Assembly (NCBI GenBank): GCA_907165135.1
Contig: OU015566.1
Coordinates: 2,666,001 to 2,730,000, forward strand
Direction: 5' to 3'
DNA from: Oikopleura dioica
Taxonomy: Eukaryota > Animalia > Chordata
DNA length: 64,000 bases
In this document: positions 1,692-63,026 of the stretch, in pieces
How the letters are laid out: each line of letters opens with the position of its first letter
Numbering within the stretch: the stretch's first letter is position 1
Translations under genes and position numbers: made by a program
Notes under the pieces: model-generated
Database searches by the model: none
Told to the model about the DNA's origin: nothing
What the model saw: the letters and a program-made list of their open reading frames with translations, nothing else

Positions 1692-4544
1692 ATGGGTTTA
1701 TTTGGAATTTTTTCGTATTTTGCCAAAATCGACAAGGATGGATCTGGATATCTAGAGCTGAATGAGATTGAAGGTAAGGTTTAAATATATTAGTGAGGAT
1801 GAGGGTCTTCGTAAAGGGTTTCAATGCGATCCCCTCGTTGTTAAATTAAAAAAAAATTCTTATGAAATAAGGGTATCTATTTTATAAATTTTGATAAAAT
1901 CTCTGATGAAATAAGGGTATCTCATTGTTAATTTTTTAAGAATACTTAAAATTATAGTCAAAATTAAGATAACATGCAAAATAATATTTTAAGACCTCGC
2001 TCGTGAAATTTTCGGCGCCGAAAAAAAACAAGAAGTCAACGAATACGTCGGTCGAGTTTTTAAAGAATACGACGCTGATAATTCTGGAGAGCTGAGCTAT
2101 GAAGAGGCTCGAAATTTCATCAAGGGTATCTACACATATTTCGAAAAGGCCGGAAACCTAACGGAGGAAGAAAGAGCAAAGTTGTTTGGAATCATTGAAC
2201 AGGTAATTTTTGGTTGAGAATGATGAGTGGGAGTTAAAATTGAGCAGTTATTTTATTTTCGTCTTGACCCGGTCAAGAAGTTGATGCGCTAAGATCAGTG
2301 TTTTATCCACTACAAAAACTGTCTTCCAAAGCAACCTCAACGCAATTAACCTTTGGTACAATTTTGAGAGCTTTTGAGGGTTGAAATGATGGGTTTATTA
2401 TGTGACTTTGGAAATATGGCCTGTGAATTTATGTCTTTCCCCGTCACAAGTAGCGATTTATCGCTCTGATGTCAATCCTCGTAATCAGCAGTCCTTTTTC
2501 TAATACGTTTCTTTTATACTTGTATTTAATTCATCCTTATTTTAGACAGAAGAACAAGTGGAAGTACCACAGGTAACATTCAATGTCATTTTGGCTTCTC
2601 ATTTTCATGCACATTGAAAATGATCTGGAATAACTACGATAACTCTTATCAGCACGAGTTATCAAATGCGCCTGTAGCTGTATCGGAGTCAACAGTGCAA
2701 GAAGTGGTCGCGCCGGTAGAAATTCCCATTCCTCCAAAGGTTTTATTCGTCAATTTATAAAGCCCAAATACATCATGCTTTATGCTTCTTATTTCAAAAG
2801 AAATAAGATGTTTCGAATATGTTAGGAATAGAAATGATAAATAAAAAATTCTCAAAACTCCCTCTTCGCTTAGGTTGAATTGCCACCACCACCGCCACCT
2901 GCAGAACCTGAGCCAGTCAAACCCGCTCCTGTCGAAAACAAGCCAGTTGAAATCAAAGTGGAAATTCCACCAGGTTCGTCCCTTACTCACTAAGGAGCCC
3001 TTATGAAGATCAAGCGTGGATCTTCATATCAACCTCTCTCTTTTATAGCGCTAGAATATTTCTTGATTGTTTTTGTCTCTTGAAATATTCTCTTCCAAAC
3101 CGCGATTATTTCAGTTGTCGTTCCTGAACCAAGTGAAGAGGTTAAAAAGTTACTTGAAGAAGGACCAAAATTGGGGGCGAATGGAGAGCTTCTTGGTCCT
3201 GATGGAAAGCCGATTCTTGGGCCAAATGGCGAGCTTTTAGGTAATTAAGATATATGGACAAAATATGCAATTAATAAAGGCGCGGATGGAAAACCGCTTC
3301 TTGGACCAAATGGAGAAATCCTCGGCCCTGATGGAAAACCTCTTCTCGGCAAATTTGGCGAATTACTGGGTCCAGATGGAAAATCTCTTCTTGGAAAATT
3401 TGGTCATCTTCTTGCGCCACCAGATGGACGAGCGCTTTTGGGCAAATTTGGAGAAATTCTTGGCGCAGATGGTAATGCGATTTTGGGACCAAGTGGTGAA
3501 ATTTTGGGAGAAAATGGATGTGCGCTGCTTGGACCGATTGGAGAACTCCTTGGTCCCGATGGAAAGCCGCTTTTGGGGAAATTTGGACAGTTGCTTGGTC
3601 CGGGAGGAGTGAGTCTTTTGGGACCGAATGGAGAGATTCTTGCGCCAGGTAGGCCATCAGAACTGGCAAAATATCAGTTTTGGTCATTTTTGAACGACCA
3701 TTTTTTAGGAGGAGTCGCCCTTTTGGGTCAATTCCAGCATATTCTTGGCCAGGACGGAAATGCTATTCTTGGCAAATTTGGTCAAATTCTTGATGCCGCT
3801 GGTGCCTCCCGTATTGGTGAATTTTCGCAACTCCTTGGCCCCGATGGTAAGTCTCTTCGTGGAAGATTTGGGGAGCTTCTTGGTGCTGACGGACGACCGC
3901 TTCTTGGACCCAACGGAGAACTTATTGGTGCTGACGGACGACCGCTTCTTGGACCAAATGGCGAACTTATTGGTCTTGATGGTCAACCTCTTCGTGGACC
4001 AAATGGAGAGCTCCTCGGTCCTGGTGGAAAACCTCTTGTTATGAGAACCGCAGCAGGTTAGAAATAAGATTTTCCGGTCATGTTTAATTTCGAAAAAGTT
4101 GCACCAAAAGTCGAAGCGAAAGTCAGTTCCGCGGCGCCACAAGCCGCTAGTCAAAGTCCCGCTTCTACCACGAATACAGCCCCGAAAGAAACACCAGCAG
4201 CTCCAGCAGCAACTACTGCCCCAGCTGTTTCTTCAACGACTTCCGATCAGAGCTATTCTCTTCCACAAAAACAGGAAATTTTCGAAAATTCTTCAGATCA
4301 TTATTGAAATTTTTTCCTTTTGAAATCATGAAAGACTGTCCGATCATCATCGCCAGTAGAAGAAGCGACGATTCAGCCAATTTCCACAAATTCAACTGAA
4401 GCTAGCCAAGAAAAGGTTAGTAAGTCTTTCGAAATCGAAGCACCTGAAAGCGAAGCATTGTATCGGACGATTAGACAAAACAGATTACAGTGTAATGATC
4501 ATGCTATCAGAGCTTGTCTGATGCATTCTGCTGAGTTTAAATGA
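1692..4544 (+). CDS. Two-EF-hand protein with Pro/Glu-rich linker, ~17 x 15-aa LG(P/K)xGE(L/I)LGxDGKPL repeats and Ser/Thr/Ala-rich tail; multi-exon
   Basis: EF-hand loops DKDGSGYLELNE (exon 1692-1773) and DADNSGELSYEE (exon from 1995); further in-frame exons near 2546, 2653, 2875, 3115, 3280, 3710, 4099 and 4335; stop TGA 4542-4544. Linkage of all exons into one gene is inferred from compatible phases. Confidence 0.65.
3171..4040 (+). repeat. Coding tandem repeat, 45-nt/15-aa period (LGPNGELLGPDGKPI type), about 17 copies over three exons
   Basis: Direct reading of the translation: LGPNGELLGPDGKPI, LGPNGELLGADGKPL, LGPNGEILGPDGKPL, LGKFGELLGPDGKSL and so on, up to RGPNGELLGPGGKPL. Confidence 0.9.
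4275..4334 (+). other. Predicted GA-AG intron with terminal stem (TTTCGAAA/TTTTGAAA, 8 bp including one G-U)
   Basis: Phase-0 removal joins ...PQKQ to TVRSSSP...; 3' arm ends 9 nt before the intron end; purine-rich acceptor TCATGAAAG. Not anchored by homology. Confidence 0.5.
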
Positions 4545-4826
4545 TTTGTAACCAAGAGGATTCGCCCTAATGCTGGTCTCACACTTCGTTAAAGCATTTT
4601 TCCAGAGCTGTCACCAGTTTTTTGAGAAAAGAAATTCTCAAGAGTGATGGAGGTGGGTGATGATTGGGCGGGGGTTTTTGATGATAACGTGGGAGATAGT
4701 GAGAACTGACCACTTGACAGCTGACGGATGAGCGCTAAAATTGTCAATTTCGTTGAAAAGTAATTGCTGGAAGTGTTCCAACTAGATGGTTATTGTGGGA
4801 GAAATTTTGTTTTCTTTTATTCAGTA

Positions 4827-5001
4827 CAGTGGCATTTGCGGTTGCCTCCCTATCCAAACGCTTCTAGAGAGGGAGGCAACGCGGGACGATTTCTGGTTCG
4901 ATTTAATGCGCCCTTATAGTCTATAAGTTATAGAAGAAGAGCGTCTGGATAGGGAGGCAACGAGGGACGCTCCAACAGGGAGGCAACCGCAAACGCCACT
5001 G
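4827..5001. mobile_element. Tc1/mariner-type MITE (175 bp)
   Basis: 25-bp TIR CAGTGGCATTTGCGGTTGCCTCCCT / AGGGAGGCAACCGCAAACGCCACTG (1 mismatch), TA on both flanks, internal copies of AGGGAGGCAAC. Confidence 0.85.
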
Positions 5002-5093
5002 TAATTTCAAATAAGGGTGTCACTATCTTAATTTTTTTTCTTCGAATCTTCGAAATCGCTTCATTGATTTCCACCCCCTTAATTTTCTTTCAG

Positions 5094-7364: not shown

Positions 7365-7788
7365 AAAGTACATGTTTGAAGCCTTTTGTGTTTAATCTTG
7401 TTCTGAATAAATTATTTTGTATGTATTTTGTTTGATGCGAAAGCTGACAGAAATCTGTCTTTGAAAAATGTCAGCGACTAAACAAATCTTGTGTTAATAT
7501 TGTTTTGCGTTTAATTTATTTATCGAGGCTTCTTGAAGACTTGAACCAAGAGGCGTTTTCAAAAGAACATTTTTAAAAGAAAAAGAAAAATGTTTATTTC
7601 TCCTTCTTATCAGCTGATTTCTTGTTCTAAACCGGGGAGATACAAAAAGAATTGGAAAACGATTTTGATTGACATCGTCAAAGATCCGTTTTTTATTCCT
7701 GGGAATAAGAGAATCAGTTGGAGAATCAAGAAGCCGTCAAAGGAAGCTCAAAATAATAGAAGCAGATGAACTTGCATCGAGACTTTTG

Positions 7789-7898
7789 TGCCGCTATGTG
7801 CCGCTTTGTGCCGCCTTTTGCCCGCAAAAAAGTCTGAGTTCCTTCAGATTTGAAAAAACTGGGCTACCGTAGGCGGCACAAAGCGGCACTAAGCGGCA
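7789..7898. repeat. Small foldback: three 10-bp GTGCCGCTTT-type units inverted against three units
   Basis: TGCCGCTATGTGCCGCTTTGTGCCGCC (7789-7815) is the reverse complement of GGCGGCACAAAGCGGCACTAAGCGGCA (7872-7898) with 2 mismatches. Confidence 0.8.
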
Positions 7899-8059
7899 TA
7901 AAACAGCATTTCTCTCGTTCTTGAGCCTTTTAGTCAAATATATGGGTTTATATCGCTTCAATTTCGTTCAAAGTCATCCACAGTACTCCACCTCAGCAAG
8001 ACATCGTTCATCAATTCGACAATGAACAACAGATTTCATAGAAAAAATATTCTTGAAAA

Positions 8060-8711
8060 CGATGAAAAGAAAATAGATCAGATTTCAGAGATTTTACAGA
8101 ATCAGTTTCAACATCGAAAAATAAGGACACACTGAGGAAGGGATGAAAAAAAAAACAATTTTAATATTCGATGAATCATCAAAAAACATATTTTTTTCAT
8201 TGACAAAAGGACGAATAGTGAGCATTTGTTCGGAAACATCGATTTCGAACAAGAAGAAGATGATGGCAGCGATTCTGGAAGCGAAAGTGGCGATGGAGAG
8301 AAACAGTTTCAGGATGAAGATCTCGAAATCGTCAACGCCCAGGAAGAAGAAGAAGCGGATGAGGGCGGCGACGACGATGACGATGATGGCGATGACGACG
8401 GAGGAACTGATGATGATGACGGGTAAGACAATCTCTTCCTTAATTTGATTTTTTGCTGAAGTGGTTTTGGTGAAAAAGACGCGGACGAACGGCAAGTCGA
8501 TATTTTGTGCCATGAAATGTTCGAAAACGACCCAAAAATGGGCGATGGTGAAATTGAGGCTGCATATCTTGAGCTCGAACTGCAGCAGAATATGGTTGAA
8601 TGCCTTGATTACGAATATGCCAGAGAAGGTGAATCTGATGAAGAGGATGATGAGTTTTCGGTTAAAAATCAGAGATGCAATATTGACATTACTTTCAAGA
8701 ATTTGACATGA
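8060..8711 (+). CDS. Highly acidic (D/E-rich) orphan protein; 5' end unresolved
   Basis: ORFs 8226-8426 and 8505-8711 are joined by a GTAAG..AG intron (about 8424-8460); an upstream exon is joined through a GG-AG intron at 8140-8209. Confidence 0.5.
8140..8209 (+). other. Predicted GG-AG intron with perfect 10-bp terminal stem ATGAAAAAAA/TTTTTTTCAT
   Basis: Arms 8143-8152 and 8191-8200; 9 nt (TGACAAAAG) to the intron end; restores the only open frame (LRK-TNSEHLFGN). Confidence 0.6.
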
Positions 8712-8926: not shown

Positions 8927-10061
8927 ATGAAGCTTTTTTCAACAATTTTAGCCACTACCTCTGCCTTGACCGAGAAAGGCGAGTACACCCTTCCAGATGA
9001 CTTCAAAGCCTGGGCGGAGGAGCACCACAAAGTTTACCCAGACTGGCGAGTCGAGAGAAAAGCATTTGGCGACTGGCAGAAAGCGAAATTATGGATGAAC
9101 GCAAAGGCGGAAAACTACGATTTTGAGCTTGGACTGACTTCCGTTGCGGATCAAAATCCTTTCCGAAAGAATGAAATTAAAAGGTCTGATGGGTGTCCGC
9201 CGGTGAAGATTGAAATCGATGGGGATGTGCCTGAATCGCTCGATTACAGAGCTTTTGGGCCGGATAAAGAGGACTGTATCGGACCTGTTTTTAATCAGAG
9301 CGCATGTGGACCTTCATCAGCGCTCGCGGTCAAAGATGTTTTAGGAAAGGCTTTTGATCAGTAAAGGTCAGGGTTTGTGCAAAATCTTAAGCAATTTTCA
9401 AAACCATTCTAAGACAGCATTATCTGTATTCAAGACAATGTCCGAGAAGACATATCACTTCAAAACATCGTCGACTGCGCAGATTGTCCCTTCCCCGAAA
9501 ATCCCGGGCCAGACTGCCTCCTCGCCGGAGCAGTTGCGAATAAGGGCGCAAATTGCGAAAAGTGCTACCCGACGAGCAATTATTGCAAGCCGGGAACTTG
9601 CAAATACGATCCCTTCTGCAATTGCTCGAATATTCAGGGCTGTGGGGTAAAGAACAAAGCAAAGAATTTTCATTCGAAAAATATTTCTAGATGATGAACC
9701 CAGAAACTGACGAAAAACTGCTTGCTTATGCTCTTTCGAAGTTTGGAACGATGTCTGTAGTTGTCGATGCCGGAAATCCATCTTTTCAGGTTTCACTAGA
9801 AATTTAAGGACCTCCCTTCCTTAATTTTTTTTTCAGCTATACACTTCGGGAATCTACTCCGAGCCGAAATGCCGAACTGATCATGGCAATCACGTGATGT
9901 CGCTCGTCGGCTACGGAACTGAAGACGGAAAAGATTATTGGATCCTGAAAAACTCCTGGGGAACCGGGTGGGGAGAAAATGGATTCATGCGAATGGCGAG
10001 AAACGCCGGAAATATGTGCGGAGTTGCTTCTTACTGTACTTACCCGATTTATACCTTGTGA
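8927..10061 (+). CDS. Papain-family (C1A) cathepsin L-like preproprotein with catalytic Cys replaced by Ser; exons 8927-9344, 9414-9646, 9691-9789, 9837-10061
   Basis: Signal peptide, I29-like prodomain, VPESLDYR, QSACGPSSAL (canonical QGxCGSCWAF), ISLQNIVDC, NHVM, YWILKNSWGTGWGENGFMRM. Confidence 0.9.
9345..9413 (+). other. GA-AG intron with terminal stem TTTTGA/TCAAAA
   Basis: Removal gives ALAVKDVLDSIICIQDNVREDISLQNIVDC, gaplessly colinear with cathepsin L AFSATGALEG...LSEQNLVDC; 3' arm ends 10 nt before the intron end. Confidence 0.8.
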
Positions 10062-13336: not shown

Positions 13337-14009
13337 TAGGGCCAGCGCGGGGAAAATCAGCATGCAGAACCCCTTGAGGTAAAGGGCTGAAACTTCGGGA
13401 CAATATAGATTTTGAGCGAATCAAAAAAATTGTAATAGAAAATTTTTTAGTCTGGTCAAGTGATCACGTGATACAGGCCCTCGAAAACCTAGAAAAGCTT
13501 GACGAGCTCGATCCCCTTGTCGTAGTCGATCACATGATAGCTCAAAAGAAAGAGCATAAGGAGTACTACCTAGAGAGTTAAAAAAATCTTTGGGCCCGAT
13601 TGTAGTTTAGGCGGTAGAAGCAAGAGAAGGCCTCGAAATGGCTGAAATTTGGGTAAAAAATGGACATCATTGGGTGATTTCTGTCAAAATAAGCTACAAA
13701 AAGGGTCATTTTTCACGTAAAACTCTCCGTGCGGACTCACACGATCGCGGGCCCAAGAATTTTTCTCATCCATTCAGAAGTACTTTTTGAGCTCTTTCTT
13801 CTGAGCGATAAAGTAATCACCTGTAATAAGGGGATCAAGCTTGACGAGCTTTTCAAGCTTTTCGAGGGCCTTTATCACGTGATCATGTGGCCAGACCAAA
13901 AAAATTTCAATACGATTTTTTTTCGTTTGTCCAAAAACTCGATTGTCCCAAAGTTTCAAACCTTCACTTCAAAGGGTTCAAGAGGCTGATTTTTCGCGCG
14001 CTGACCCTA
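13337..14009. mobile_element. hAT-type foldback MITE with ~260-bp imperfect inverted arms
   Basis: Ends TAGGGCCAGCGCG / CGCGCTGACCCTA; 8-bp target duplication CCCTTATC (13329-13336 and 14010-14017); arms about 13337-13600 and 13745-14009. Confidence 0.8.
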
Positions 14010-17438: not shown

Positions 17439-19307
17439 ATGCCACCAAGAGATGAAAAAATTCAAGTCGATCAGCGCAAATTTGAGCCTGGCCTAGCAAC
17501 AATCCCGGCTCAAGCTTACCGAAAAGCGCTCAAATCTGGCTTCAGATTCAATCTAATGGCGATTGGAGAGCCAAGTTTGGGAAAGACATCGACAGTGAAT
17601 ACAATCTTCAAATCGGAAATTTACAACGAGCAATTTGTCAGCTCAACTCAGAGAATCGCCAATTCGGACTCGCTGATTGTCCAAGAATTTGACCTGAAGC
17701 TGAAAGAGAATGGTGTTCCACTGATTCTCAGGTTTGAAGGGAGAGATATGTCAAGCCCCTGACTTATTAAACGAGAATTCAGAGTCATCGACTGTCCTGG
17801 TTATGGCGCCTTCATCGACAATTCAAACCAAGTGCCAACTATTGTCAGTTATCTGGATGGTAGACACAGACGGCAATTCGACCAAGAAATGGATATCGAC
17901 CGTGACATTGAAAAAAATGATGATGAGCTTGTCCACTGCTGTCTCTGTGAGTTTATTTTCTTTCGAAGTGCAAATGAATTTTTTAAGTCTTCTTTTCGCC
18001 AAATTGCCGGACAGTCAAAGAACTCGACCTTGAGTGCCTAAAAGCGATCCACAACAAAGTCAATGTTATTCCAATCATCGCGAAGGCTGATAGTTTGACG
18101 CTGGACGAGCGACACGAGTTGAGAAAGGAAATTCTCCGTGTTTTCGAAAAAAATAAAATCAGTTGCTATGCATTTCCGGAAAATGTTGATGATAGTCAAG
18201 CAGCGCTTATCAGGAAATTTGTTCAAAAAATTGTTAGAAAAAGTGAATTTTTCGTTAAAATGGAGAATTCCACTTTTAATTCGATAGACATTATAGACAT
18301 CTTAAGTCATCTGAGATGACTCATCTCTAGGCATCTGTTGACATCCGTAGACATCTATAGACATCTACTGACATTTTAAGACATCTGTAGACATTATATC
18401 TCAATATTATCATTGAACTTCTTTTTTACCTACAAAAAGGCTCGTTGATAAAAACGAACTGCTTCTACTTTGAACGTCAACTTTTAAAATCAATTTGAAC
18501 GGAAAAAAGACGAATGAGAAGAAAATCTCCATTCAGCATCATCAGTGGAGGAAGAATGATCGACGCCGGTGCTGATTCCATCGGAAAACAAAAGTTGTCA
18601 TCTTTCAAAATTTTCGTGCTAAAAGCAATTCTAGCGTTTCTCTATTCGACGAAGAAAAGAAAGAAGAGCCCGAATCAAAGCCAGTCGCCATGAGACGCTA
18701 TACCTTCGGAGCATGCGAGATCGAAAACGACGAGCACTCCGATATGCGAATTTTGCGCCATCTGATGATTCAAACGCATCTTGTCGATCTTGTCAACTCG
18801 ACAAAAAATGAAAAATACGGGAATTTTCGCGAGCACTGGTTGACAAAGCACCCAATTAAATTTCCAGAAAAGAAGCCGGAAACGACCGAAGAGCTGAAAA
18901 AACGTCTTGACAAGGAGCTCAAGTAAGTTTTTCGCGGAAAATTTGAATATTGAAAACTCTCAAGGGATGAAATAATGGGGCACAAAGAAAAACTCCAACG
19001 AATTCAAGCGGACATGGAAGCAGTCTTTCAAAAGAAACTCCAAGAGCGGCGGATGAAAATCGCCGAAGGAGAAAGAAAACTTGAAGAAATGCAGAAAGCC
19101 CACCGGGAACACATGAAAGATGAAGAAAACGTCATCGCAATCAAGCGAAAGTAAGAAAATCAATCCGACCTTGACAAAATTATTTTCTTCAGCAAAATCA
19201 AGAAAGACATGGCAGCGCTAGAAGCTGAGCTGATTCAGTCGAACAGGCAGTCATTTGAATCGAAAAATGAGAAGAAAGAAAAATCTGGAAGACGTCTCTT
19301 TTTCTAG
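17439..19307 (+). CDS. Septin GTPase with C-terminal coiled coil (divergent)
   Basis: GFRFNLMAIGEPSLGKT (G1), VIDCPGYG (G3), VHCCLFFF, KVNVIPIIAKAD (G4), RRYTFGACEIENDEHSD, coiled-coil tail ending RRLFF*. Confidence 0.9.
18214..18509 (+). other. GA-AG intron (296 nt) with terminal stem GTTCAAA/TTTGAAC
   Basis: Joins AALIR to RMRRKSPFSIISG (septin xPFAVVGS motif); purine-only acceptor GGAAAAAAG 9 nt after the stem. Confidence 0.75.
18286..18395. repeat. Degenerate ~10-bp minisatellite (GACATCTATA-like) in septin intron
   Basis: Repeated GACAT/CATCT units: gacatctt, gtcatctg, ggcatctg, gacatccg, gacatcta, gacatcta, gacatttt, gacatctg, gacatta. Confidence 0.65.
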
Positions 19308-20015: not shown

Positions 20016-21829
20016 TTACTTTCGTCCGGGTGCAGTAGAACTGTAATCGGCAGCCCAATCAGTCTCAGTTTGTGGTCTCCATGAGGCGTTGCAGTTGTCA
20101 GCGTTTGAACAACACTGGGTGCATCTTTTTAATTGGTTCAGAGAAGTTTTTCTAGTTTTAAATATGCTGTTTGTAAGTTGCTATTTAATGATTTCTGAAT
20201 CGTTCCTGGAAGTCTCCTTCATTCCATTTTTGTAAGCGCCGGAGTGGCCATGGATGATGTGAAGAGAATTGTAGTTCAAGTTGCTCGAGCCATCAAGAAC
20301 GTAGTCTGGATCAACGTAGAGTCCGCTGACAAGTCCACCAGAATCAGGAGAACCGTCAGTGAAATCAGTGAAAGTTTTATCATGAGAGTCGGCGTGGTTT
20401 CCATTGGCATTGTAATACCACTAACAATAAGTAAATGTCTTTGATCTTAAAATAATATCTCACCTCATCAGCTTTAATGTCATATGGTCGTCGGGCAATC
20501 TTTTCAGCGGTGTTAGTTGCATCGACAGGCCAGCATTGTCGTCCAGCCTTGACAAGGAAGTTCTGGTACTTTTGCATGTAGCAGGCCTTGGCTTGTTTGC
20601 AACCTCGCTCGAAGGAGACCAAGAAGCCGAACTGTCGTCGCTCTTCAACAAAGCAGACACCAGATGAGTATGGGCAGAACGTTGTTGGCGCATCTCCGTC
20701 TCCGTCTTGGTCAGCGTCACAGGCGGTGATAGCAGCGGCCTCGTCAGTGTAAAAGTCAGCTGAATATATTTGAAATCAATGTTATCCGAGTCATTGCTTA
20801 CATCCGTTCTTCTGCTTGAGAACAAATTTATCATTGTCCGTGTCCCACATAACTTGGAAGTCGATCTTGCAAACTTTGCATTGCAGTCTTGCTTCATCAT
20901 TGATGTCGCTGAATGCTCGGGCATCACTGGGGTGAAGTCCAAGTTCCCAAGATTTATCATAAGTTGCATCACCGGCTTCATTGTTATGAGTAGCGGAGAT
21001 CCATGATCCCTGATAACGAGCATGGTCGTCTTGGTCGAAGTCGCTCAAGACACCTTTGTCTTGGATGCCACCTAAAAGTATATTATTAAGTCTCAACCTT
21101 AATTATTCTTTATCTCGTTTGATAGAAATGTTTTTGCTCCTTACCCATGTAGTTCTCCATGTTGTTGTGGACGTGTCCAATATCAACGGCTTGGTCGGAA
21201 TGGTTAGTGTGGACCTTTCCATCCCAGTGGCGACCGTAATCAGCTTTCCACATTGCGTATGCATCGGGAGCAGCAGCTCTCTGGCCACTGACGTATCCGT
21301 AGGAAGAGACTTCGCCGAAGTTCTGGTAGGGATCGTAGCTGCCGCTGGATCCAGTGTTGTAGCCGTATCCGGTATTGTCATAGCTTGGGTAGCTCAAAAT
21401 GTTGGAAAGGCCGTAATCGTAGGAACCGTAAGGATTGGAAGATGGAGCAGATGGAATGTATGGCTGGTAGTCCTCGGCTCGTTCGGCGTCATCAGCTACT
21501 GGGGCCTAAACTTGGGTTGTACAGAAATTCTCGAGGATGAAAATTACCATTGTTGTGGTCTGTAGGGAGTTCACTTTTGTTAGATAGCCTTATTGATAAA
21601 AAATCTGTATTCAAATAATTGATCGCAATTATTTACTTCGTTAGATTAGTGCATGAGTACTTGTCTCTCGATGCATTTTAGTAAAGAAATTGAAATAAAA
21701 AAGATAAAGAACTTTTTAAAGAACTCATCGTCTCAACTTTCAGAGAAGAAAGTGAGGTTGTAAAAATTATCTCTTCAGTTGATGTGGTTGCCGTTGTTGT
21801 TTTTGTTGTTGTTGTTGTTGTTGTTGTTC

Positions 21830-21884
<55 letters not shown>

Positions 21885-40429: not shown

Positions 40430-43400
40430 GATGCGGCCTTTGACTCCATCGGCGGTTTTCTTTGGGCTGATGGACGCCAGGTGAGTTCTTTTTTATCATC
40501 TGTCTGAGCTTGAAGACGCTTTTTGACTCAAAAATTGATATTGACGGAAGTCCATTTTTTTCAGTTTCACCTTGGAGATGGATCACTCGAAGTGTACGCA
40601 GAAGATACGGTATCCGGAAGGTTCGTTCGTTTACAATTAAATAATTATCACAGACCCCAAATCCGCCTCTCCAACGTGAATTTTGCTCTCCCGAAATAAG
40701 GATAATAACTTTTCGAAAAGCTTGTTTTTTAAATCTTTCTTCAAATTAAGGGATGAATTCGGCGACTATGAACTTTTACGATGGCGAGCAAAGGCGGAAA
40801 ATGAGGAAGAGGAAATTTTGGTCGAATTTTTCATCAGAAATTATGAAAAAAGAGACATCATCGTTTTTGAACAACATTTTATGTAAGTTGGCGAAATTCG
40901 AGCGCGAAAAAACGCGCTGATCCGTCTAAAAACGTGATTTTTTTATCGGGCGAATTCAATAGCTCCGGACACGATAGCCAAGCTGTTAGCGAAGAAGACG
41001 GGATGGATACGATTTGCACCGCTTTTCCGATGATTCGCGTGCCTAAGCTTTGGTTCAGCAAAATTGATTTTTGAGCCGGATTTTCACGATGATGTTGAAC
41101 TTGAAGGTTAGGAAGATGAAGGATTTGGATATATAACGCCGGGAGGAAATATGATGGGAAAGGCTTAAATTTCGTGCTTTTTTTCGAATTGAAGAAAATA
41201 ATGCTAATCCCGGTTAATAAAGGTGCAACACGTATCTCGTTTGGGCCGTGGCATGATCTTCCAGAAACGCTCTCCGAAAACGGTGCGGCTTACGGTTAGA
41301 TTATCCGCCTCACACTTTCTCTTAGAAGCGACCTTCATGGACGGACGTGAAGGTGGATTTGCGACCATTTTTACGAAAGATTTCTCGACTGTTTGGACTT
41401 CTCTATCCGAGCCGATGTCTCAATACATCCAGATTCTCACCGATCCAATCACGAATCAACAAACAATGTCTTTCGGAACCATGGGAGGTGTTAAACACAT
41501 TCCAGCTGGCCACATCACTAGAACCGTCCTGGTCGGAGGCGATGGAATCAAAGAAGGAATCGAAAACTGGGGCGAGTTTTTCAGAAAATTTCACGAAAAA
41601 AGTTCGGCAAAAAGAGACGCGTTCCTCGAAATGCGATACTTGGGATATTATACAGACGCCGGAGCTTATTATTATTATAACACGGAGCCAGGGCTGAATT
41701 ATGAAGAAACTTTTGATTATATACGGTAAGAAGGGAGGAGTTTCGAAGGAAATCATTAATCCCCAATCTTCCGCCACACTTTTTCTTTTAGAAAATACGC
41801 CGATGAAACCAGTTTTCCGATCCGATTCGCTCAGTATGACTCTTGGTTCTACCCCCATGGCGAGGGAAATGGATTGCTAGAATGGGAAATTCGAACTGAC
41901 GATGGATACTTTCCGAGTAAAAACTTGAAGTACTGTATGGAATGTTATGTTCTTTAGACGGCGGCGAGGCAGCATATGCAAATCACAATGTCCCAATAGT
42001 GGCCCACAACCGGTGGTTTGGACCGGACGCGGTTTATGCCAAAGAAAACGGGGGCGATTACGATTGGGTTCTTGAAGACAATAGAAAACGTGATAAAATG
42101 CAAGATTTTCCATTTTATTTATGTTATTCAAATCACGGAAAAAGAGTCGATCTTCCAATAGGCCCACCAGGCTCTGGAGTAGGACCATATTCATTTCCCA
42201 GTAAAACGAATCAGAAAGGAATAAATTTTTGATCTGTTTAGACGACACGAGTTTTTGGCCGGATTTTCTGGCTAATCGGCGCCAATGGGGGCTCAAAACG
42301 TACGAGCAAGATTGGATGGACGTTCAAATAAATAGAATGAATGCGACTCAACAAGACCTTGCTCTCGGAAGGTAAAGACTCCCTCTTCTTCGATGAGTCA
42401 TTGTGACTCATAATTTATAAGTCATAATTTATGAGTTATATTTTATGAGTCATAATTCATGACTTATAAAATATAAGTTATATATTATATAACCCATAAA
42501 TTATGAGTCATATTTTATGAATCATAATTCATGAGTCATAATTTATGACTCGTCATGATATGAGTCTGTAAGACGATAACTACGCTTCAATTTACTTTTG
42601 AATAACAATTTTCAGAGATAACTGGCGGCAAATGGACTGGGCTGCTGAGCTGAAATACCTGGATATACAATACTGTCTTACTCTTCCACGTTTCGTCCTG
42701 TTTTCAACTGAACTTGACAACGTCTCCCACGCTCGTGGCTCGCCAGATTATGCTTACAACTTCCTCCAGTGGAATATCGGCTTTCAGTCGCTCTGGGGAG
42801 AGGCTGCCGGTCTCGCTGTTTTAAAAGTATTGAGAAAAACGGGACGAAAAAAATCGGGATGAGAATATTTTCAGGACACGTTCCACTCGGTTCATGTCCA
42901 GCCGGAAGTAGAGGCGGATGGAGATGTTCCAGGCGACATTTTCAATGAACATTTTCCGGATTTACATGCTGCTGTTTCCACTTTTTCCTCCGGTTAGTTC
43001 GAAGACCGTCTTAGAGGGAGAAAAAAGCGTTGAGGATTATTTCAGCTTATGAAGAGATAAAGTAACTGATAAGAATCTAGGGCGTTATGTTTTTTTTCAG
43101 GCCCGGTTGTTCCTGGAGATCGAATCGGCTTCGAGGAAAGGGGTTCTTAATCCTTTTTAAAAATCATAATTTTCACCATAAAATCATGGCCACCCTCGGC
43201 AAGGATCGTCTTCTCATCGACAAAAGCATCAACTCCGACGGCCTCATCCTCCGCCTCGGCAACTCCATGAAACCTATCAACTCCGAAATGCAGCGAAAAG
43301 CGCGAAATGACTGGGACGGCCCAGCCAGCCAAGAGCCAGGAGAAAATCTCCACATCTTCGGAAACCGATTCGGCGCTCAAATTTGGTCGGCAAAGTCGAC

Positions 43401-49816: not shown

Positions 49817-50870
49817 ATGTCGAATCCGTTTCAAAATGTCAAATTGCCGATGACATCGAGGATATTGAAGTACTCGTTGTTTTTCTCAAATCTGCTTATT
49901 TATATTCTCGGGATTGTTCTCATGAGCACAGGTAGAGACGTTTATGAGAAGTTTTTCTATTAAAAAATGAAGGTTTTACGGTTTCTGCTGAATATGCTTC
50001 GGCGAATGGCCTGGCCGAGCTTTTCCAGGACAATTATACAGCACTGCCAGTATTTGTCGGAGTCGCGGGGGTCATCCTCAGTTTCGTGACTTTCTTTGGC
50101 TGCTGGGGTGTTGTCAAGGCAAGGCGAAAAATGTAGCATTGGAGCAAGTTTTACCATCAATTTTAGGAATCAACTACGATGACACTAATTTATGGAATTT
50201 TACTTTTCCTCACGATGGTCTCGTTGCTGTTGGCTGGCATTTTCGGCTACTTATACAGGGATGCCGTTGATCACTATGTTGAAGGTCAGCTCACTACTTC
50301 GCTCAAACACTGGTGTCATTCCAATCCAGAGCCATGGGACTCGATTCAGGTGAGAGAAGACATGGAAGACAATTATCAAATCCCTAGAAATACTACAAAT
50401 GCTGCGGCATCACAAGTCCAAAAGACTGGTCCGAAAAGGCAAAAGACTTCGAATACTGGGCTTACGGTTATGCACACTTGAACAATCTGACATCTACAGA
50501 GACAAAGTTTTCTGAAACTCCAGTTCCAAGCTCCTGCTGTGCGGAAATTTCCGGAAGGGCTTACCAAACTTTTTTCTGGAATAGAAATCCACTTGATAGT
50601 TTTGAAAAGAGTAATTGTGAGCTGAAAAAGACGGATGCGGCCTCCTTGAGGGCGGAAACATTCATGAAGAAGGATGCCTAAACAAACTTGAGCAAAACAT
50701 CGCTGATAATTTATCAGCAGTTGCAGGTTGGAAATTTTTTTACGCCATATCTTCAAAGAAATAATTAAGGCGCTGCCGTCGGTATTAGTATCTTCACCTT
50801 GATAGGCATCTTTGTGGCGTTCTTCCTTTTCCGAAAATACCGAGAGCGAAACTACAGCAATATGGACTAG
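49817..50870 (+). CDS. Tetraspanin
   Basis: Four TM segments, FFGCWG, WDSIQ|KYYKCCG, PVPSSCC, GCL in the large loop; includes a GC-AG intron 50119-50166. Confidence 0.9.
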
Positions 50871-52569: not shown

Positions 52570-55500
52570 ATGAGCAGACGCACCAGTCAGGCGACGAGCC
52601 GCGCCAGTTTCGCCAAATCGCCAGCGGTACAGAGAGATCCGAACATGAAGGAGACGGTGATTTCGTTCAATATCAAGGGTGGACAGAATTTATCAGCAAC
52701 AAAGGTCAGTTTTTGCTTTCAAAAAATTATTTTCTTTAATTTTTTGCTACAAAAAATATTTTCACGAAATATTTTGAATGAAAATTTCTTTTTGACTTAT
52801 CTTAGTGACACCCTTAATCCTATAAAAGATGGTCAATCGACTACCGAGAGATTTTTATTTCTAATTAATAAAAATTTTTATAAATATTTTCATTTTTGCC
52901 ATTTAAAAATTATAAACGATCAGTGTCATCATAAGGGAGTCAGAATGTTATTTCTGCTTTCAATCTTGTTTTCTCAATCCTATCAACCCAAATTTAGGAT
53001 GGTTCTGAAATGTTCATTCGCCTGTCTTTCGGCTCCTTCACCGCTGAATCTGAATACGTCGAGGCAAAAACCGAAGCTTCCAACGTCAAACTCGCGATCA
53101 AGGAAGAAATCTCCGGCACGAGCACTCCCTTCTTCGACAATTTGGTCCGATACCCCTTGACAGTCAGCTTGATCGAAATGCTGCCGAAAGAAAAGAAGCA
53201 AAAAGAAGATAAAATTATTTGCCACAGAGAAGTGCACCGAGATCTTTCGCCATTTTTGAAGGGAAAGAGGAAGATTTCCGAAAGCGTGCGGGAGGTTTCA
53301 AAAGAAGCGCCAAATGTTCAGGTCAATTTGGAGATTTCTGTTTCCATAAGTCCAGGTAAGAAACAATCCTTTTTTTTCTGTTTTCTTAATCGTTTTCAGA
53401 GCTGAAACCCGAATTCCTGGAAAAGAACCGAATCATGACCCTCCGCCTAATCTACGCTTCTGGAGTCCCCGATTCATGGGTCGGAAACAATTTCAACGCC
53501 TGCCTTCCCATTCAAAAAGAAGAAAACGAAACCGCCGCGATCAAGTTTTCCGGAAAAGCAGAAAACGCTTTCAACACAAGCGAAAAATTGCCCCTCTTCT
53601 GGAGCGGATTGAAAAACACTACCGAGAAAATCATCGCGAAGGAAAACTACAAAATTCCAGACAGCGCGGAAGCTGAAGAAAATGCGGATGGAGAATGCCC
53701 TAATGCGATTGTTTTTACTTCGGAGAGGAAGATGATCATGAGTGAAGATGATTGCAGAGCTTTTGAGGCGAGAATCGCGAAGGTATCAAATTTGTTGCCG
53801 ATTGAGGTTTCGAAAGTGAAAGATACAGGAAAGGGATGAGATAGTTTTCGCTAAAGAAACTCTACTTGATTGGTCATTTCTAGCCAAAAAAACTGTGTAG
53901 AAGCCTGTGTCAGGATCTTGAAAGAGCTGATTAGCCGGGTAAGATCCTGACTCAGGTTTCTACACAGGTTGCCATGACAGGACTGTCTTTTGTACGTTTC
54001 AAATTGACTCCCTAATTCTTGAGGCTCAGGTTGAGCTCATTATCATCCCTTTGAAAAAGACGCAAAAGCAAAAGGAAAAGCAAAACCTGACGATGGTGAG
54101 CTCCACAACCACGGAATCGCCCTGATCAACCTCGAGTCACTTCTCTATCCCGGTGTAAAATCCGTCTCTGGCAAATTCAAGCTCAATCCGTTTACACAAA
54201 ATCAACTTATTCGCGCTGGATATGGAGAGAGTATCACAGCGAGTTCCTGCAACAGCGGCACGATTTTATCGATGGGATCAACTTCAAGAAACGACAGTTC
54301 TGATGCCGGCGGCGCTTCAGACATCAGACCCGAATCACGACAAATGGCCCAAGACGCGCTTCCTTACAAAGAAATGAACTCGTCAATTTTCTTCGAAATC
54401 TCGTTCTCCCGCGCCCTCGTCGATCGCGCTACTCTTCAAGACCTGGACAAGAACCTCGCGACTTTGATTCCAATGCGGCCGAAAATCCCAAGGAAGAAAT
54501 ATGGAGCTGACATTAGCGTTCAAGAGTATAAAAAGCAAATCACAGAAGTCGCGAAACAAGTTCTCGCGGAGATCAGAGCTTTTGCGCCGTCGACTAAAGG
54601 AGAATCTTTTGAAAAATCATTATTGTATCAGGTAAGAAAAGAAGCATAAGGAGTAGAGCCCCATTTTGATTTCAGCTGAACAGAACTGGAAAACACGCAC
54701 AATACCACGAACTGCTGAAAAACTCGATCATCCGCGTCGTCCGCGAGAAATTCCTGAAAAAGAAAGACTTTGAAGATCCAGAAGCAAAGAAAGAATTCAT
54801 CGAGCAACTCTACGTTTTTCTCATAGGCAAATGGGTTTCTTTTTTATTTTTGAGAAATGATTTTTTGAAAGTTTTTTGTTTCGCCAAAAGGGAGGAGGCC
54901 GTATTTTTGGAGGGTGAGGGCGGGATTGTTGGTTTGGAGTGCGAGGAGGACGATGAGGATTTCTTGCTGTTGGCGGCGGCATTTTGAGATTTCTAGAGAT
55001 GAAAAATAGTAATCAGATAAACCTGTATTAAACATGTATTTTACCTGTGTAAGAATTCTCTGCACAATCGTATAAAAGAAGAGGTTTCAGGTCTTCAAGA
55101 CCTTCTTGAAATCCTTGCTTTTTTCAATGCTTTTGAAAAGCGTTCTGATATCCTTATTCCTTGCATACTTATTAAAATCTAGAGCATTTCCTGAGAATAT
55201 CTCCCTTCCGTCATCATCTTCCCCAGCACCATAAAAAGCGTATTGTCAAGCTCTCCACTTGATTGTCTCGTTTTTCGCGAGTCACTTTCTTCATCCCTCA
55301 GTTGGGAATTGCTTCCGCTCATTACGGGAACATAAGTTTTAATTGGTCTATTTCCTCGCACGCGTGAAACCGTCGGACGCTGATAAATCGGTCGAGCGGT
55401 TCTTTTTCTCGGCTTTGAGTACGCTTGAATAACGAGGAGCTTTTTGAGCAAGTTTGAGTTGAACGCGGATCGGCGGAATCTCGACTTTGTGTTTTGGAGA

Positions 55501-57685
55501 AAGTCGATAGCGGCTTTTGTATCTTCCTTGACCAATTCAGAAAGTAGAAAATCATTCGAGCTAAGGAAGGAGAATTCTTCGGCTTCTTGAAGATTCTTTC
55601 AAACAATATTCATCATTGCTAATTATTTAAGAGTGAAATTAACGAATAAGTTCGAATGGTTCAAAAACACAAAATCCATAAGAATCATTCGAGATTTTTC
55701 GTTTAAAAATTTTCCTTTTCAGTTTCAGGCGACAACCTCAAAATATCAATTGGAACTGCGTAACAACAGAACTTTATAATAAAAATAAATTTAAATATTT
55801 TCCTGAAATCCCCGACCATCGATTCTCTCTTCTTCCACTTCTCGAATTCCTGATCTCTTCCTTGATTTCACTACTCCATCAACACCTCTTACAATGAAAA
55901 AGAGCCAAAAAACCTTCAAAATTTGTGATCTCATCAACATTTTTGAAAATTTGTGAGTTTGAAATGAACACCGGTAAAACATATGCCGCCTGGCTTATCC
56001 AATCTACGGTTCATTAGGCACTCGAGTTGAGACTTTTTATGTCAGTGCTTTTAACCCTGTTTTCAGGTTGAGTTAACATGGCGGAACTGAAAAAATATTG
56101 ATTATTGAAGGCGAAATTTTGGACATGATTACATAACAAAGGATTTTTTCTTCCCGTTTATGACTAAAACACTCATTTGTCTACCAGACGGCGAAAAAAC
56201 CCGAATTCAGAACAAATGCACGTGGCAATCAACGAACAAGTGGTCAAGCAAACTGACGAAGAGCCAATTCCAGATGTAGTTACTGTCGAGGAGCTCGCCA
56301 AAGTGGCCCTTCTCGCGGAAAAAATTGGAGATTTGAAAAAAGCGGAAGCGACTTGGCTGGAGCTGCTTTCCCGTGACGAGGCGAATTCGGACAATTGGGC
56401 GGGCTATGGAAGAGTGTGCTACAGAAAAGGAGATATTGGAAGAGCATATGAAGCTTTCAAGCAAGCTGTTTCATTAGAACACTCCGAACCCTGGTACATG
56501 ATCCTCGCCTCCCTCCTCGCCCGAGAAGAAGGATTCCCCAACGAAGCAAAACTCATCCTCCAGCGCGCAGCTGCCAATCCTGACTACAACGATCAATCGA
56601 CCAAGGGTGGCAAAGAATCGAGGCTCATGGAGCGCGCGCTTTCAAACATCTTCCTTTCGGAAATTCATGAAGAACAGTTGGAAAACAGACTCAGCGAATT
56701 CACGAAGTTGGAGGGAAAGAGGCTGATAAAACTTTTAAACTCAGGTAAAAACGGAGAATTGGACCGTTTGAACTCATTTTTGAAGCTCATCCTGGCGAGG
56801 GAGTCCTCCTCGAAGCGGCTGAAAAACTCTTCGATTCTGGCTTCTGCGAAGTTTCGGACAATCTTCTCGCGAAATACCTTTCATCTCTCGATGCTGAAGA
56901 GCCGATTCCAACAGCTGCTTTGCTTCTCCGAACTCGACTGATGATTCAGCTTGGCAAAATTGATACGGCGATGGAGACAGTTATTCAAGCGACGGAAGCT
57001 GATCATAAAAATGCGAATGTTTGGGCGCTAAAGGTTTGCTTCCCATTTCTCGTCCTTCGACTGATTTTCGATTCTAGGGCGAGATCTTGCACATTCAAGG
57101 AAACGAAGAAGCAGCAAAAGAGTGCTTCTCCCGTTGTCTTTCTTACACTACTCCTTGCAAAGATCCAGCTTTTGTGTGCCTTCAGCTTGGCGATATTTTC
57201 TCCGCCGAGGAGAAATGGGAAGAAGCAAGAAATTACTACCTCCATGCATGCAGACTTAGTCCGACATCGATTTCCTGGCTTGGAGTGGGCATTTGTAGTC
57301 TGAGAATGAGTCGACTTTTGGAAGGTAAATGATCTGAATGATTTCGCGACGGCAGAAGGCAATATCATAATTTTATTAATTTCTTCAGAAATTTTTATTA
57401 AGAAAAAACTAACATTTTTTCATACAAAAAGCAAAGTTATGGTTTCCAATTTTCATCTCATTTTTTTTAGCGGAAGACGCATTGGCCGAAGCAAATCTCC
57501 TCGACTCAAAGAGCCCAGAAGTGTGGGGCTATCTCTCCGTCCTTTGCCTCCGAACACATCGAAAAGTCGAGGCTGAGCAGAGCTTCAAGTACTCGATGAA
57601 ACTCGGTCTTGACGAGTCATCATCTCTTCACAAAGAAATTCGAGGGCTTCAAGCAAAACATGGATTCGGCGATCCAAGCCTTTGA
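52570..57685 (+). CDS. CFAP70: Cilia- and flagella-associated protein 70 (TTC18), TPR-containing
   Basis: LINLESLLYPGVK, LYVFLI|EQMHVAINE and C-terminal AEDALAEANLLD..EVWGYLSVLCL...EAEQSFKY...GFGDPSL match CFAP70 motifs as I recall them; TPR repeats 56300-57685. Confidence 0.85.
53829..54059 (+). other. GA-AG intron with perfect 10-bp terminal stem AAAGGGATGA/TCATCCCTTT
   Basis: Arms 53830-53839 and 54043-54052; the AG 7 nt downstream (GAAAAAG) is the acceptor that gives in-frame KDT-DAKAKGK. Confidence 0.75.
53893..53967. repeat. Intronic hairpin, 27-bp arms (2 mismatches)
   Basis: CTGTGTAGAAGCCTGTGTCAGGATCTT ... AAGATCCTGACTCAGGTTTCTACACAG. Confidence 0.85.
54827..56210 (+). other. 1.4-kb GC-AG intron of CFAP70 with terminal stem GGGTTT/AAACCC
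   Basis: Joins LYVFLI to EQMHVAINE; 3' arm ends 8 nt before the intron end. Confidence 0.75.
54844..55940 (-). CDS. Putative nested antisense gene in the CFAP70 intron, signal-peptide-like N-terminus, basic protein with RFRR site
   Basis: MLMRSQILKVFWLFFIVRGVDG at 55940, ORF 55179-55535 and further coding-like segments; exon joins not verified. Confidence 0.4.
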
Positions 57686-61157: not shown

Positions 61158-61477
61158 GGTGGACAAGCGAATAAAAATCGTTCTGATAGGCAAAATGGCA
61201 AGTGAAAAATACAAACAAAAATCTCATAATGACACTTTTTTATGCACTTATTTGTGAATATGCATTGCTTTTTATATCCTGGTTGTGGTATTGACTGGAA
61301 TCCGATTTCTGTCATCATTAAGAAACAGGGTAATGAGGATAATTTATCATGGCGCATTTATACTGTAAAATCGGGATAAGAAAGTGTGGCTTAGCATAAA
61401 ACAGGTTTAGTATACTGACCCACAAAACTTATTTTGGGTAGACTTTCTTGCTCAAATATGTGCGGCTGTGTTTTATT

Positions 61478-63026
61478 TCATTTTTTCGCAGTATAGTAGT
61501 TGCATTTGATAAATGGCATTTTGGTAACTTCGGCTTCGAAAACATTCTTTCTGACTTTGACTTGAAGTTGTGTCCCTGGCTTGGCTAATTCGAGCGGGAC
61601 GTATCCCATTCCAATATTAAGGCCGAGAGTAGGACTTGGGCCACCAGAAGTGACTCGGCCGATTTTTTCGCCGTCTTTGAAAAGCTCTGCTCCTTGTCTG
61701 GCAGGTGGTTTTCCCTTTTGAAAAATCAAACCAACTCGTTTTTCGTCTGGCTTTGACTTTTGCTGCGCCACGATTTCCGCACAACCAGGAAAATTTCCCT
61801 GAGCTCTGCGAGATTTCGGGACGGTAAAAAGAAGAACAGCTGATGGTGGAAGCGTCGTTTCGTCGATATCATTTCTTAGAAAGAGGGTTGAAACAGGGAT
61901 GATGCTTGAGAATATTTTACCCTATATTGTAACATCAAAATAAGGTCTCCTCGGGGTTCAAAAACATTGATTCTTACATGATGTAAGTTACATCAAAAAT
62001 TGTAAGTGACACCCTCATTTATTATTCTAGAGATTCTGTACTCTATCAAGTTTCAACCCTTTCCCATAAAGACACAATCCTGCTTCCAATCTCAATGTAT
62101 CCCTCGCTCCAAGTCCTGCCAAAAGCGCTCCATCCTCCATCAGTTTTTTCGTCAATTTCTCAACTGCTTCTGCCGGAATCGAAAGCTCGAAGCCATCTTC
62201 TCCAGTGTATCCGCATCTTGTTGCGCGAATACCGTCGATTCCAAAGAGGGAAAGATCAGCTCCTTGCATGAAAGAAAGGGTGGAGAGATCTGTTGTAGTT
62301 CCTTTTTGAAGAATTTCCGCGGCCTGAAAACAATAATTGTACTTTTCTTCGGATAAGTATATAGGTACGAATTAGAGTAAGCATTGACTCTAACAAACTA
62401 CCACTAATAATTTTAATCAATTAAAACCGTGAAGGCAGAAATATTACCTTAGGACCTTGAACGGCAATAAGCCCAGTCTCAATCTTCTCCAATCGACAGC
62501 CAAAAGAAGCCGCAGCAGTCTCCAAAATCGCAAAATCTTGCTCCGCCATAGAAGCATTTGAAACGATGTAGATTTCATTGTTTGAAATTTTGTTCACAAT
62601 CAGATCGTCCAAAATTCCTCCCTTTCAAGAGAAGTCTCAATACCTTCAACTCTATCGAAAATTCTTACCTGATCATTTGTAAAAAGAGCCAAAGACCCTG
62701 AATTATCCGGCATAGCAGCAACATCAGCAGTGCAAACAGATTCAATGGCGGTAACTGCTGCTTCTCCAGTCAACCGCGTCTGGAGCATATGCGACACGTC
62801 GAAAATCGAGCAGACGGAGCGAGTATGTTCGACAGATTGAGGAATCGACACTCCCTGAATACAGCGATAAATAAACAAATCTGGCGATAAAGGCAAGAAC
62901 CTTGTAAATCATCGGCATGTCAAAACCAGCAAATTCGGCCATTGTAGCATTTTGCTCTTTGTGAAGATTCCATAACGGCGTCTTTCTCAAAAATCTCGCG
63001 GGAATTCGAAAAAGTGAATTTCTCAT
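61478..63026 (-). CDS. AMT: Aminomethyltransferase, glycine cleavage system T protein
   Basis: [10 protein letters not shown]...[64 protein letters not shown]|[18 protein letters not shown]...IGMGYV. Confidence 0.95.
61875..62063 (-). other. GA-AG intron with perfect 11-bp terminal stem AGGGTTGAAAC/GTTTCAACCCT
   Basis: Boundaries are fixed by the conserved AMT peptide GLCLYG|NDIDE; arms at + 62050-62060 and 61884-61894; 9 nt to the intron end. Confidence 0.85.

Follow-up and report, generated by a model that had tools for sequence, protein, structure and literature searches.

Genes and non-GT introns of the window

The stretch of DNA analysed here (the window) comprises 64 kb of chromosome 1 of Oikopleura dioica from Okinawa (OKI, OKI2018_I69; ~2.666-2.730 Mb), has a G+C content of 40% and is the reference for all lineage comparisons. 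A locus reached through the annotated protein Oidioi.mRNA.OKI2018_I69.chr1.g667 matches positions 15365-43942 of the window with 100% identity. Among its genes are those for a septin, a Gal-3-O-sulfotransferase (Gal3ST), a 962-aa TPR protein (named CFAP70 in the initial annotation, which was made from the sequence alone) and an aminomethyltransferase (AMT), and distributed over these and other genes are 12 introns whose donor is not GT. GA-AG, GG-AG and GC-AG introns are already known in this species, as the initial annotation had stated (PMC7072748); its own claim was that each of the 12 is closed by a stem formed between its two ends. This end-pairing is real, specific to the non-GT introns when compared with GT introns, intron-specific in sequence and persistent in orthologues.

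Stems were scored ungapped in a terminal register, in which the 5' arm starts at +1 to +8 and the 3' arm ends 3-12 nt before the intron end, and were compared with shuffles of each intron for run length (p_run) and duplex energy (p_E). The introns, with the arms given in 5' to 3' order of the stated strand, are the following; the last line is a GC intron that differs from the others.

4275-4334, plus strand: GA-AG intron, 60 nt; 5' arm 4280-4287, 3' arm 4318-4325; AU-rich 8 bp stem including G·U, weak and not significant (p_E 0.16); open reading frames joined in phase 0
8140-8209, plus strand: GG-AG intron, 70 nt; 5' arm 8142-8152, 3' arm 8191-8201; 11 bp stem (p_run <0.004, p_E 0.013); boundaries by reading-frame joining only, the upstream frame being short
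9345-9413, plus strand: GA-AG intron, 69 nt; stem with interruptions, beginning at +1, its core at 9352-9357 / 9398-9403; duplex -8.4 kcal/mol, weak (p_E 0.09); long open reading frames on either side, phase 1
18214-18509, plus strand: GA-AG intron of the septin gene, 296 nt; stem 18218-18227 / 18494-18503, 10 bp with two G·U pairs (p_run 0.007)
20125-20205, minus strand: GA-AG intron, 81 nt; stem 20194-20199 / 20137-20142, core 6 bp (duplex p_E 0.007)
32749-32806, plus strand: GG-AG intron of the Gal-3-O-sulfotransferase gene, 58 nt; stem 32752-32758 / 32792-32798, with a further two G-C pairs outside it; duplex -15 kcal/mol (p_E <0.004)
35756-35814, minus strand: GA-AG intron upstream of a GH9 exon, 59 nt; stem 35803-35810 / 35764-35771, 8 bp (p_run 0.017); open reading frames of 118 and 455 codons joined in phase 1
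36170-36227, minus strand: GA-AG intron, 58 nt; stem 36220-36227 / 36174-36181, from +1, 8 bp, Watson-Crick (p_E 0.003); open reading frames of 252 and 136 codons joined in phase 0
43136-43203, plus strand: GA-AG intron candidate, 68 nt, by reading-frame joining only; end stem 43140-43144 / 43192-43196 of just 5 bp, not significant (p_E 0.10), the 5' end folding on itself instead
53829-54059, plus strand: GA-AG intron of the 962-aa TPR gene, 231 nt; stem 53830-53839 / 54043-54052, 10 bp, Watson-Crick (p_E 0.003 or less)
54827-56210, plus strand: GC-AG intron, 1384 nt; short GGGTTT/AAACCC-type stem 54832-54838 / 56197-56203, weak (p_E 0.11-0.15)
61875-62063, minus strand: GA-AG intron of the AMT gene, 189 nt; stem 62050-62060 / 61884-61894, 11 bp, Watson-Crick, extendable to 14 bp (p_E <0.004)
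50119-50166, plus strand: GC-AG intron with a strong donor, 48 nt; without end stem

On the stated strand, all 12 intervals open with GA, GG or GC and close with AG, and for each a phase exists that joins the open reading frames. An exonic AG precedes the donor in 10 of them, A stands at +3/+4, and the 3' end is A-rich and closes in AG without a pyrimidine tract. The first downstream exon base is a purine throughout (9 A, 3 G), a criterion that is weakly informative, as the GT introns of the window mostly have it too. The short non-GT introns measure 58-81 nt against 38-47 nt for GT introns, which agrees with the length difference reported initially. The 48-nt GC intron, named from the start as a stem-less exception, retains that status with a best stem of 3 bp (p_E 0.5).

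Support for the intron boundaries

Boundary support beyond the joining of reading frames is available for 6 of the 12 introns (20125, 53829, 54827, 32749, 61875 and, in part, 18214), and the others (4275, 8140, 9345, 35756, 36170, 43136) are placed by reading-frame continuity only. Confirmation by RNA had been proposed as a check of the junctions, and for intron 20125-20205 the junction 20124->20206 is present exactly in RNA contigs of two metatranscriptome runs (X1 and X3); five GT-AG introns in this gene are confirmed by these contigs as well. Loose poly(A)-type ends (T runs) occur at window position 19797 in RNA reads and one contig and mark the 3' end of this minus-strand gene.

The official protein P0277 (CAG5103228.1) maps with gaps of exactly 231 and 1384 nt, which are the introns 53829-54059 and 54827-56210. 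At 32749-32806, the flanking exons hold consecutive parts of the Pfam Gal-3-O-sulfotransferase profile, and a locus of another lineage that is 85% identical (L002) differs in its exons at third codon positions, while its intron has changed in length by a net 1 nt, which is no multiple of three. In the official model, g667 (P0121, 377 aa), this GG-AG intron is read through in another frame. The same model (window 25365-33942, plus strand) starts with a first exon of 7 aa located 7 kb upstream, and the conserved sulfotransferase N-terminal exon at 32512-32748 is missed.

Homologue alignments (tblastn) run on across the junction of 61875-62063, and its codons are uninterrupted in three more distant relatives (L004, L005, L010). 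Upstream of intron 18214, the exon can be aligned with septin-7 as far as the junction at 18213; no coverage of 18214-18509 was present in the RNA runs searched. Boundaries in five genes had been described as fixed by protein motifs, and this holds for Gal3ST and AMT by homology, for the TPR gene by the official protein and for septin up to the junction, the cathepsin identity of the gene at 9345 being left unconfirmed by PDB and Pfam searches. In that gene, a coding stretch 200 nt upstream pairs with the donor region of 9345-9413 as a 28-nt inverted repeat (82%; 9141-9168 / 9340-9367), which may be a competing helix or a chance match. The GH9 exon, used as query, returned only paralogues at ≤56% identity under a length filter that leaves out a 1105-aa orthologue.

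RNA contigs of two runs also join positions 23316 and 23611 on the minus strand, delimiting an intron (23317-23610) with TT..AG borders, or GT..AA if shifted by one. Its ends also pair, in an interrupted stem of 8 bp (ATG-A-GTTCA / TGAAC-C-CAT) followed by a 7-nt tail, so that the stem-closed class may not need G at +1. Next to it, at 21550-23300 on the same strand, lie poly-threonine exons separated by AT-rich introns with complementary ends of the GTTC/GAAC type; RNA contigs are not placeable there owing to the repeats.

Pairing of the intron ends

In most of the introns, RNAfold and duplexfold pair the first ~14 nt with a segment ending 4-12 nt before the 3' end. The best terminal-register stems measure, in the order of the list, 8, 11, 6, 10, 6, 7, 8, 8, 5, 10, 7 and 11 bp, so that the lengths given initially are roughly right, and the shuffle means are ~4.4-7.0 bp (5.7 on average). 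Combined over the 12 introns, the deviation from shuffles amounts to a Fisher p of ~3e-10 for duplex energy and ~7e-10 for run length, a result with which dinucleotide shuffles agree and which confirms the terminal stems as a group. About eight of the stems are individually convincing, and four (4275, 9345, 43136, 54827) are weak.

Controls were 17 GT-AG introns, 5 of them confirmed by RNA and the rest defined by strict consensus together with reading-frame joining or official annotation. They have no excess of end pairing over shuffles (Fisher p 0.89), and the two sets differ with a Mann-Whitney p of ~5e-6; the expectation that non-GT introns would be more end-complementary than both GT introns and shuffles is thus borne out in the window. 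Gene g675 is the one gene with an official model that agrees, and its boundaries were taken from the official protein; of its 8 introns, the GA intron forms the strongest end duplex by a wide margin (-16.6 kcal/mol). When the register constraint is lifted (first versus last 45 nt), the best stem is still terminal in 14 of 19 non-GT introns, in keeping with the near-constant register noticed earlier.

Complementary ends could be a by-product of two linear signals, namely a purine-rich donor (GAAAGG) and a pyrimidine stretch (CCTTTC) acting as a short polypyrimidine tract. A GAAAGG start is indeed common to 5 of the 12 introns, most of which have CCTTT or CTTTC near the 3' end (36170, 53829, 61875), and because of these shared ends the arms were swapped between introns as a control. 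Swapped arms still average -5.9 kcal/mol, slightly better than shuffles, but the introns' own arms average -10.3 kcal/mol, with mean runs of 8.1 versus 6.1 bp, and none of 20000 arm-swap permutations reaches the observed sum (P<5e-5). The stems are therefore intron-specific and not merely a shared GAAAGG/CCTTTC motif, which upholds the original view that pairing rather than a motif is involved. Since the stems also extend into sequence peculiar to single introns (GATGA/TCATC, GTTGAAAC/GTTTCAAC, TTCAGA/TCTGAA, AGCTTCAA/TTGAAGCT) and carry matched indels in both arms, linear signals are scarcely probable as the explanation. A mirtron or another known RNA was considered and rejected, as only a basal helix of 6-14 bp is formed, the loop is largely open in introns of 58-81 nt, and no Rfam match was obtained.

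Orthologous and lineage-specific introns

Comparison loci were obtained from metagenome and Logan contigs and represent at least three other Oikopleura lineages, with exons 76-88% identical at the nucleotide level. One locus from a distant animal (L011) was left out, and two (L012, L013) were rejected as relatives because they are unrelated to the window and had entered their cluster spuriously. An RNA-seq run of 2026 under the same species label (X24) has reads 90-95% alike to the window, almost none of them usable, and represents another cryptic lineage.

The stem is kept in four orthologous non-GT introns (Gal3ST, AMT, and the GA and GC introns called CFAP70-GA and CFAP70-GC), the interiors of which are strongly diverged or unalignable. 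In the Gal3ST intron of L002, the donor has changed from GG to GA while the arms are nearly unchanged, two C-to-T changes turning G-C into G·U pairs; the loop has many substitutions and two indels. The AMT intron of L003 has 106 nt against 189 nt in the window and an 11 bp stem, in which TT/AA of the window's arms has become TTT/AAA. The interior of CFAP70-GA in L014 is unalignable by blastn, and both arms are retained, an additional A in the 5' arm being matched by an additional T in the 3' arm (duplex -11.6 kcal/mol, p 0.014). A GA donor also occurs at this site in three further contigs (L007, L008, L009), which end before the 3' arm; the 5' arms differ among the contigs. The 1.4-kb GC intron retains GGGTTT/AAACCC in L006, with changes in the neighbouring bases and the spacing. 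A look for compensatory changes had been proposed as a check; the changes seen between the lineages are G·U changes and matched indels, which keep the pairing. GT introns compared across the same lineages have no conserved ends beyond the splice dinucleotides. Terminal versus interior identity in global alignments was not discriminating in AT-rich intron sequence.

Two further non-GT introns, L003_GC and L006_GA, belong to other lineages and are absent in OKI. They were delimited by alignment to the intron-less OKI sequence, not via the stem, and have stems of 10 and 8 bp in the same register, each with an A-rich tail. With the orthologues L003_GA (11 bp), L002_GA (7 bp) and L014_GA (13 bp with one bulge), five stems from other lineages are available, each reaching p≤0.03 by one or both of the shuffle measures (for L002, by run length), and G at +1 and the final AG are kept in all five introns. 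Both L003 junctions are spanned and confirmed by protein P0291 (353 aa, encoded on a 1192-bp contig and hence intron-less). Among six GT-AG introns of these loci, none has a significant stem (p≥0.067). The whole AMT gene is present on a contig of a more distant Oikopleura-like animal (L004:1-4709) and has four GT-AG introns of 316-979 nt, all canonical and without significant stems, none of them at the site of the OKI GA intron.

The set could owe its stems to selection, if boundaries or introns had been chosen for their stems and stem-less non-GT introns overlooked. Half of the boundaries are indeed placed by reading-frame continuity, and an unbiased full intron list could not be compiled: two dynamic-programming ab initio gene finders were dropped because they fused genes and over-called introns. 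A search for intervals of the form G...AG closed by a terminal stem of 8 bp returned ~4000 hits per strand, no more than in the reversed sequence, and is uninformative without coding context because the AT-rich background swamps it. Against this, the six boundaries fixed by RNA, the official protein or homology include those of the strongest stems, introns of other lineages delimited without recourse to stems have the same feature, and the initial annotation itself listed the stem-less GC intron. An artefact of selection is on this evidence improbable.

Gain, loss and origin of the introns

Several of the non-GT introns are present in some lineages and not in others: L004, L005 and L010 lack the AMT GA intron, and OKI lacks L003_GC and L006_GA, as stated above. 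A GT-AG intron of the OKI AMT gene (62324-62447, minus strand, 124 nt) is likewise absent in L003 (L003:119-121), so intron turnover affects canonical introns too. In L006, an intron of at least 420 nt, the 5' end of which is off the contig (L006:1-424), lies within what is a continuous exon in OKI (54062-54646).

Such variation is what would be expected if the stems were decaying terminal inverted repeats (TIRs) of introns derived from transposons, of the miniature inverted-repeat transposable element (MITE) or introner type, with no splicing role of their own. This had been offered as the second of two initial readings, and several observations suit it: both introns exclusive to another lineage have strong stems, intron 53829-54059 contains a nested hairpin (a 30-nt inverted repeat, 90%, 53890-53919 / 53941-53970), the sense strand has no excess of G·U pairs, and non-canonical introns bearing TIRs are known in a sister larvacean (PMC11282704, after Henriet 2019). 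Comparison with the intron-less alleles, however, reveals no target-site duplication (TSD) beyond 1-3 nt (1 nt for AMT; 3 nt, AAG, for L006_GA), no second copy of any of 14 introns exists within the window, and the repeats are subterminal, being set in from the intron ends by 0-7 nt at the 5' side and 3-12 nt at the 3' side; a classical cut-and-paste MITE origin is therefore unsupported here. Moreover, the differing stem sequences would require many families, introns of 58 nt leave no room for an element, and the stems persist in four orthologous pairs, two of them with interiors beyond the reach of blastn, which is not expected of neutral repeats. As the whole explanation, TIR relics are accordingly unlikely. 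What survives of that proposal is an origin by insertion: the insertion of hairpin-forming DNA is plausibly the simplest way for an intron to be born with a stem.

Long inverted repeats or palindromes with arms of 27-262 nt are found elsewhere in the window (13337-14009, 29126-29570, 27179-27425, 42398-42558, 4825-5003, 7784-7908). In appearance they are AT-rich palindromes or elements of the foldback or MITE type, and most of them fall outside the introns under study.

A helix that may bring the splice sites together

A functional helix that juxtaposes the splice sites is, in our judgement, the best reading and somewhat favoured by the evidence; that it acts at the RNA level, and that it has the role in splicing and the manner of action outlined here, is what we infer. 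The introns would be of the spliceosomal type with weak ends, the donor consisting of G followed by A, G or C in place of T. Each would possess its own helix of 6-14 bp, in which about +2 to +14 pairs with a segment ending 3-12 nt before the 3' splice site. Formed in the pre-mRNA, this helix would hold both splice sites, and probably the branch region too, adjacent to each other, reduce the effective intron length and designate as acceptor the AG that lies a few nucleotides past it, thus compensating for ends that U1 and U2AF recognise poorly. The pairing would then be retained by selection while the remaining intron drifts. The helix was probably there from the birth of the intron, by way of inserted DNA bearing a hairpin, as suggested by intron gain and loss between lineages and the 8-10 bp stems of both lineage-specific ones.

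This is the first of the initial readings, a stem that juxtaposes weak sites, and it fits best on account of the specificity of the stems and their retention in orthologues. The persistence of the arms while the interiors are replaced argues for constraint, and that it is the pairing which is constrained is indicated by the diversity of stem sequences, the changes from G-C to G·U and the indels matched in both arms.

Several points weigh on the other side. Four of the 12 stems are weak, and a GT intron (53356-53399) has a 7 bp stem, in line with the initial remark that a few GT introns have stems. Sense and antisense duplexes do not differ in stability (10 versus 7), and their G·U counts are equal (17 versus 16), so they give no sign of selection on the sense RNA as opposed to a DNA repeat. 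No clean double substitution was seen in the stems, only one-sided changes and matched homopolymer indels, and a GA-AG intron of a more distant species (L010) has no stem. RNA supports 1 of the 12 non-GT junctions in this analysis, the study base is 64 kb with ~18 introns, and those who first listed the introns may have picked them with stems in mind. Finally, a formed helix would cover +2 to +6, positions that U1 and U6 must read, and would therefore have to act transiently, or before or after donor recognition.

Another reading is removal by a non-spliceosomal pathway that reads structure, as in euglenids, in which the helix and fixed spacers would set the cut sites and the intron would leave as a circle. 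The layout resembles the Euglena code, where a 3-nt spacer, the helix, a spacer of 5-6 nt and an initial exonic purine follow one another (PMC12501133); here the two spacers span 0-7 and 3-12 nt, the downstream purine is present in 12 of 12 introns, and the RNA-supported junction 23317-23610, with its TT..AG or GT..AA borders, also has an end stem. Yet G at +1 and the terminal AG are found in all 12 introns and in the five from other lineages, the exonic AG that precedes the donor and the A at +3/+4 match U2-type sites, the non-GT introns contain no CAG/CTG motif, and the literature treats larvacean non-canonical introns as substrates of the U2 spliceosome (PMC13326754; PMC11282704). A euglenid-like pathway is thus very improbable. 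In favour of the splice-site-juxtaposing helix, G at +1, the final AG, the exonic AG and A at +3/+4 are compatible with recognition by the major spliceosome, as reported for the GA-AG introns of this species (PMC7072748).

In its strongest form, the proposal would be that an RNA helix is an obligatory cis-element of intron definition in a chordate, that the stem presents the donor and the A-rich acceptor jointly to the spliceosome by a rule convergent with the euglenid code, and that inserted hairpin DNA becomes an intron at once. We hold this tentatively, as possible but rather less than evenly probable. The term 'splice-site code' in the initial annotation exceeds what 64 kb can show. A structure-closed non-canonical intron with U2-like borders in a chordate is confirmed as an observation, and its interpretation is partly supported.

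The minor spliceosome is lost in Oikopleura, yet roughly one intron in ten departs from the GT rule. Current work approaches the handling of non-GT introns by the major spliceosome through modification of U1/U6 and variants of U2AF (PMC13326754). A helix conserved from end to end, if true, would be a simple cis-acting answer to this recognition problem, would explain the tolerance of new introns at birth and would link larvacean introns both to the structure-defined introns of euglenids and to the transposon-born introns of Fritillaria and protists. As the official sulfotransferase model misses such an intron, a stem-aware splice model would improve annotation.

Comparison with known systems

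Helices in yeast introns shorten the distance between splice signals; they are located in GT-AG introns, either in the stretch from donor to branch point or in that from branch point to acceptor. Mirtrons pair both intron ends and form a hairpin along their whole length, of the pre-miRNA type and with ~20 bp or more. Unlike either, the introns described here have only a basal helix of 6-14 bp that closes a largely unstructured loop.

Within the species, G*-AG non-canonical introns were reportedly described by Denoeud et al. in 2010. The known O. dioica G*-AG introns belong to the same class as those studied here and share G at +1, the final AG, the exonic AG and the A after GA (PMC7072748). 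Accounts of them give dinucleotides and flanking logos only, so the pairing of intron ends is the addition made here; no description of end pairing in Oikopleura introns was found in the accessible literature, which does not cover Denoeud 2010 with its supplement or Henriet 2019.

Introners of Amoebophrya have inverted repeats of 8-20 nt that join the ends of non-canonical introns, with presence/absence variation (PMC7789003; introners are also known in Micromonas and Aureococcus). They form repeated families with direct repeats of 3-5 nt at their boundaries, whereas direct repeats here do not exceed 1-3 nt and no family was seen. In Fritillaria borealis, a sister larvacean likewise without a minor spliceosome, MITE-derived non-canonical introns reportedly have the TIRs and TSDs of transposon families and ends that are mostly AG-AC or AG-AT (Henriet et al. 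2019 in the summary of PMC11282704; PMC13326754). The likeness extends to many non-GT introns at positions peculiar to a lineage, to intron ends that carry inverted repeats and to A-rich 3' ends, which in Fritillaria are bound by a divergent U2AF2 (PMC11282704; PMC13326754). O. dioica differs in its G*-AG ends, in the lack of a detected TSD or family, and in repeats that are subterminal and conserved between lineages.

A structural parallel exists with the nonconventional introns of euglenids, in which a helix joins the intron ends and the pairing has been shown to be required (PMC12501133; also PMC6221363, PMC3935182). In both systems, a helix near the two ends unites the junctions, the spacers are short and nearly fixed, and a purine follows downstream. 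Euglenid introns have variable borders, a CAG/CTG core at +4 to +6 / -8 to -6, a machinery that is unknown and a circular product. In O. dioica, by contrast, the helix has neither a fixed sequence nor a common core, and the G...AG borders and the U2-like donor context are kept.

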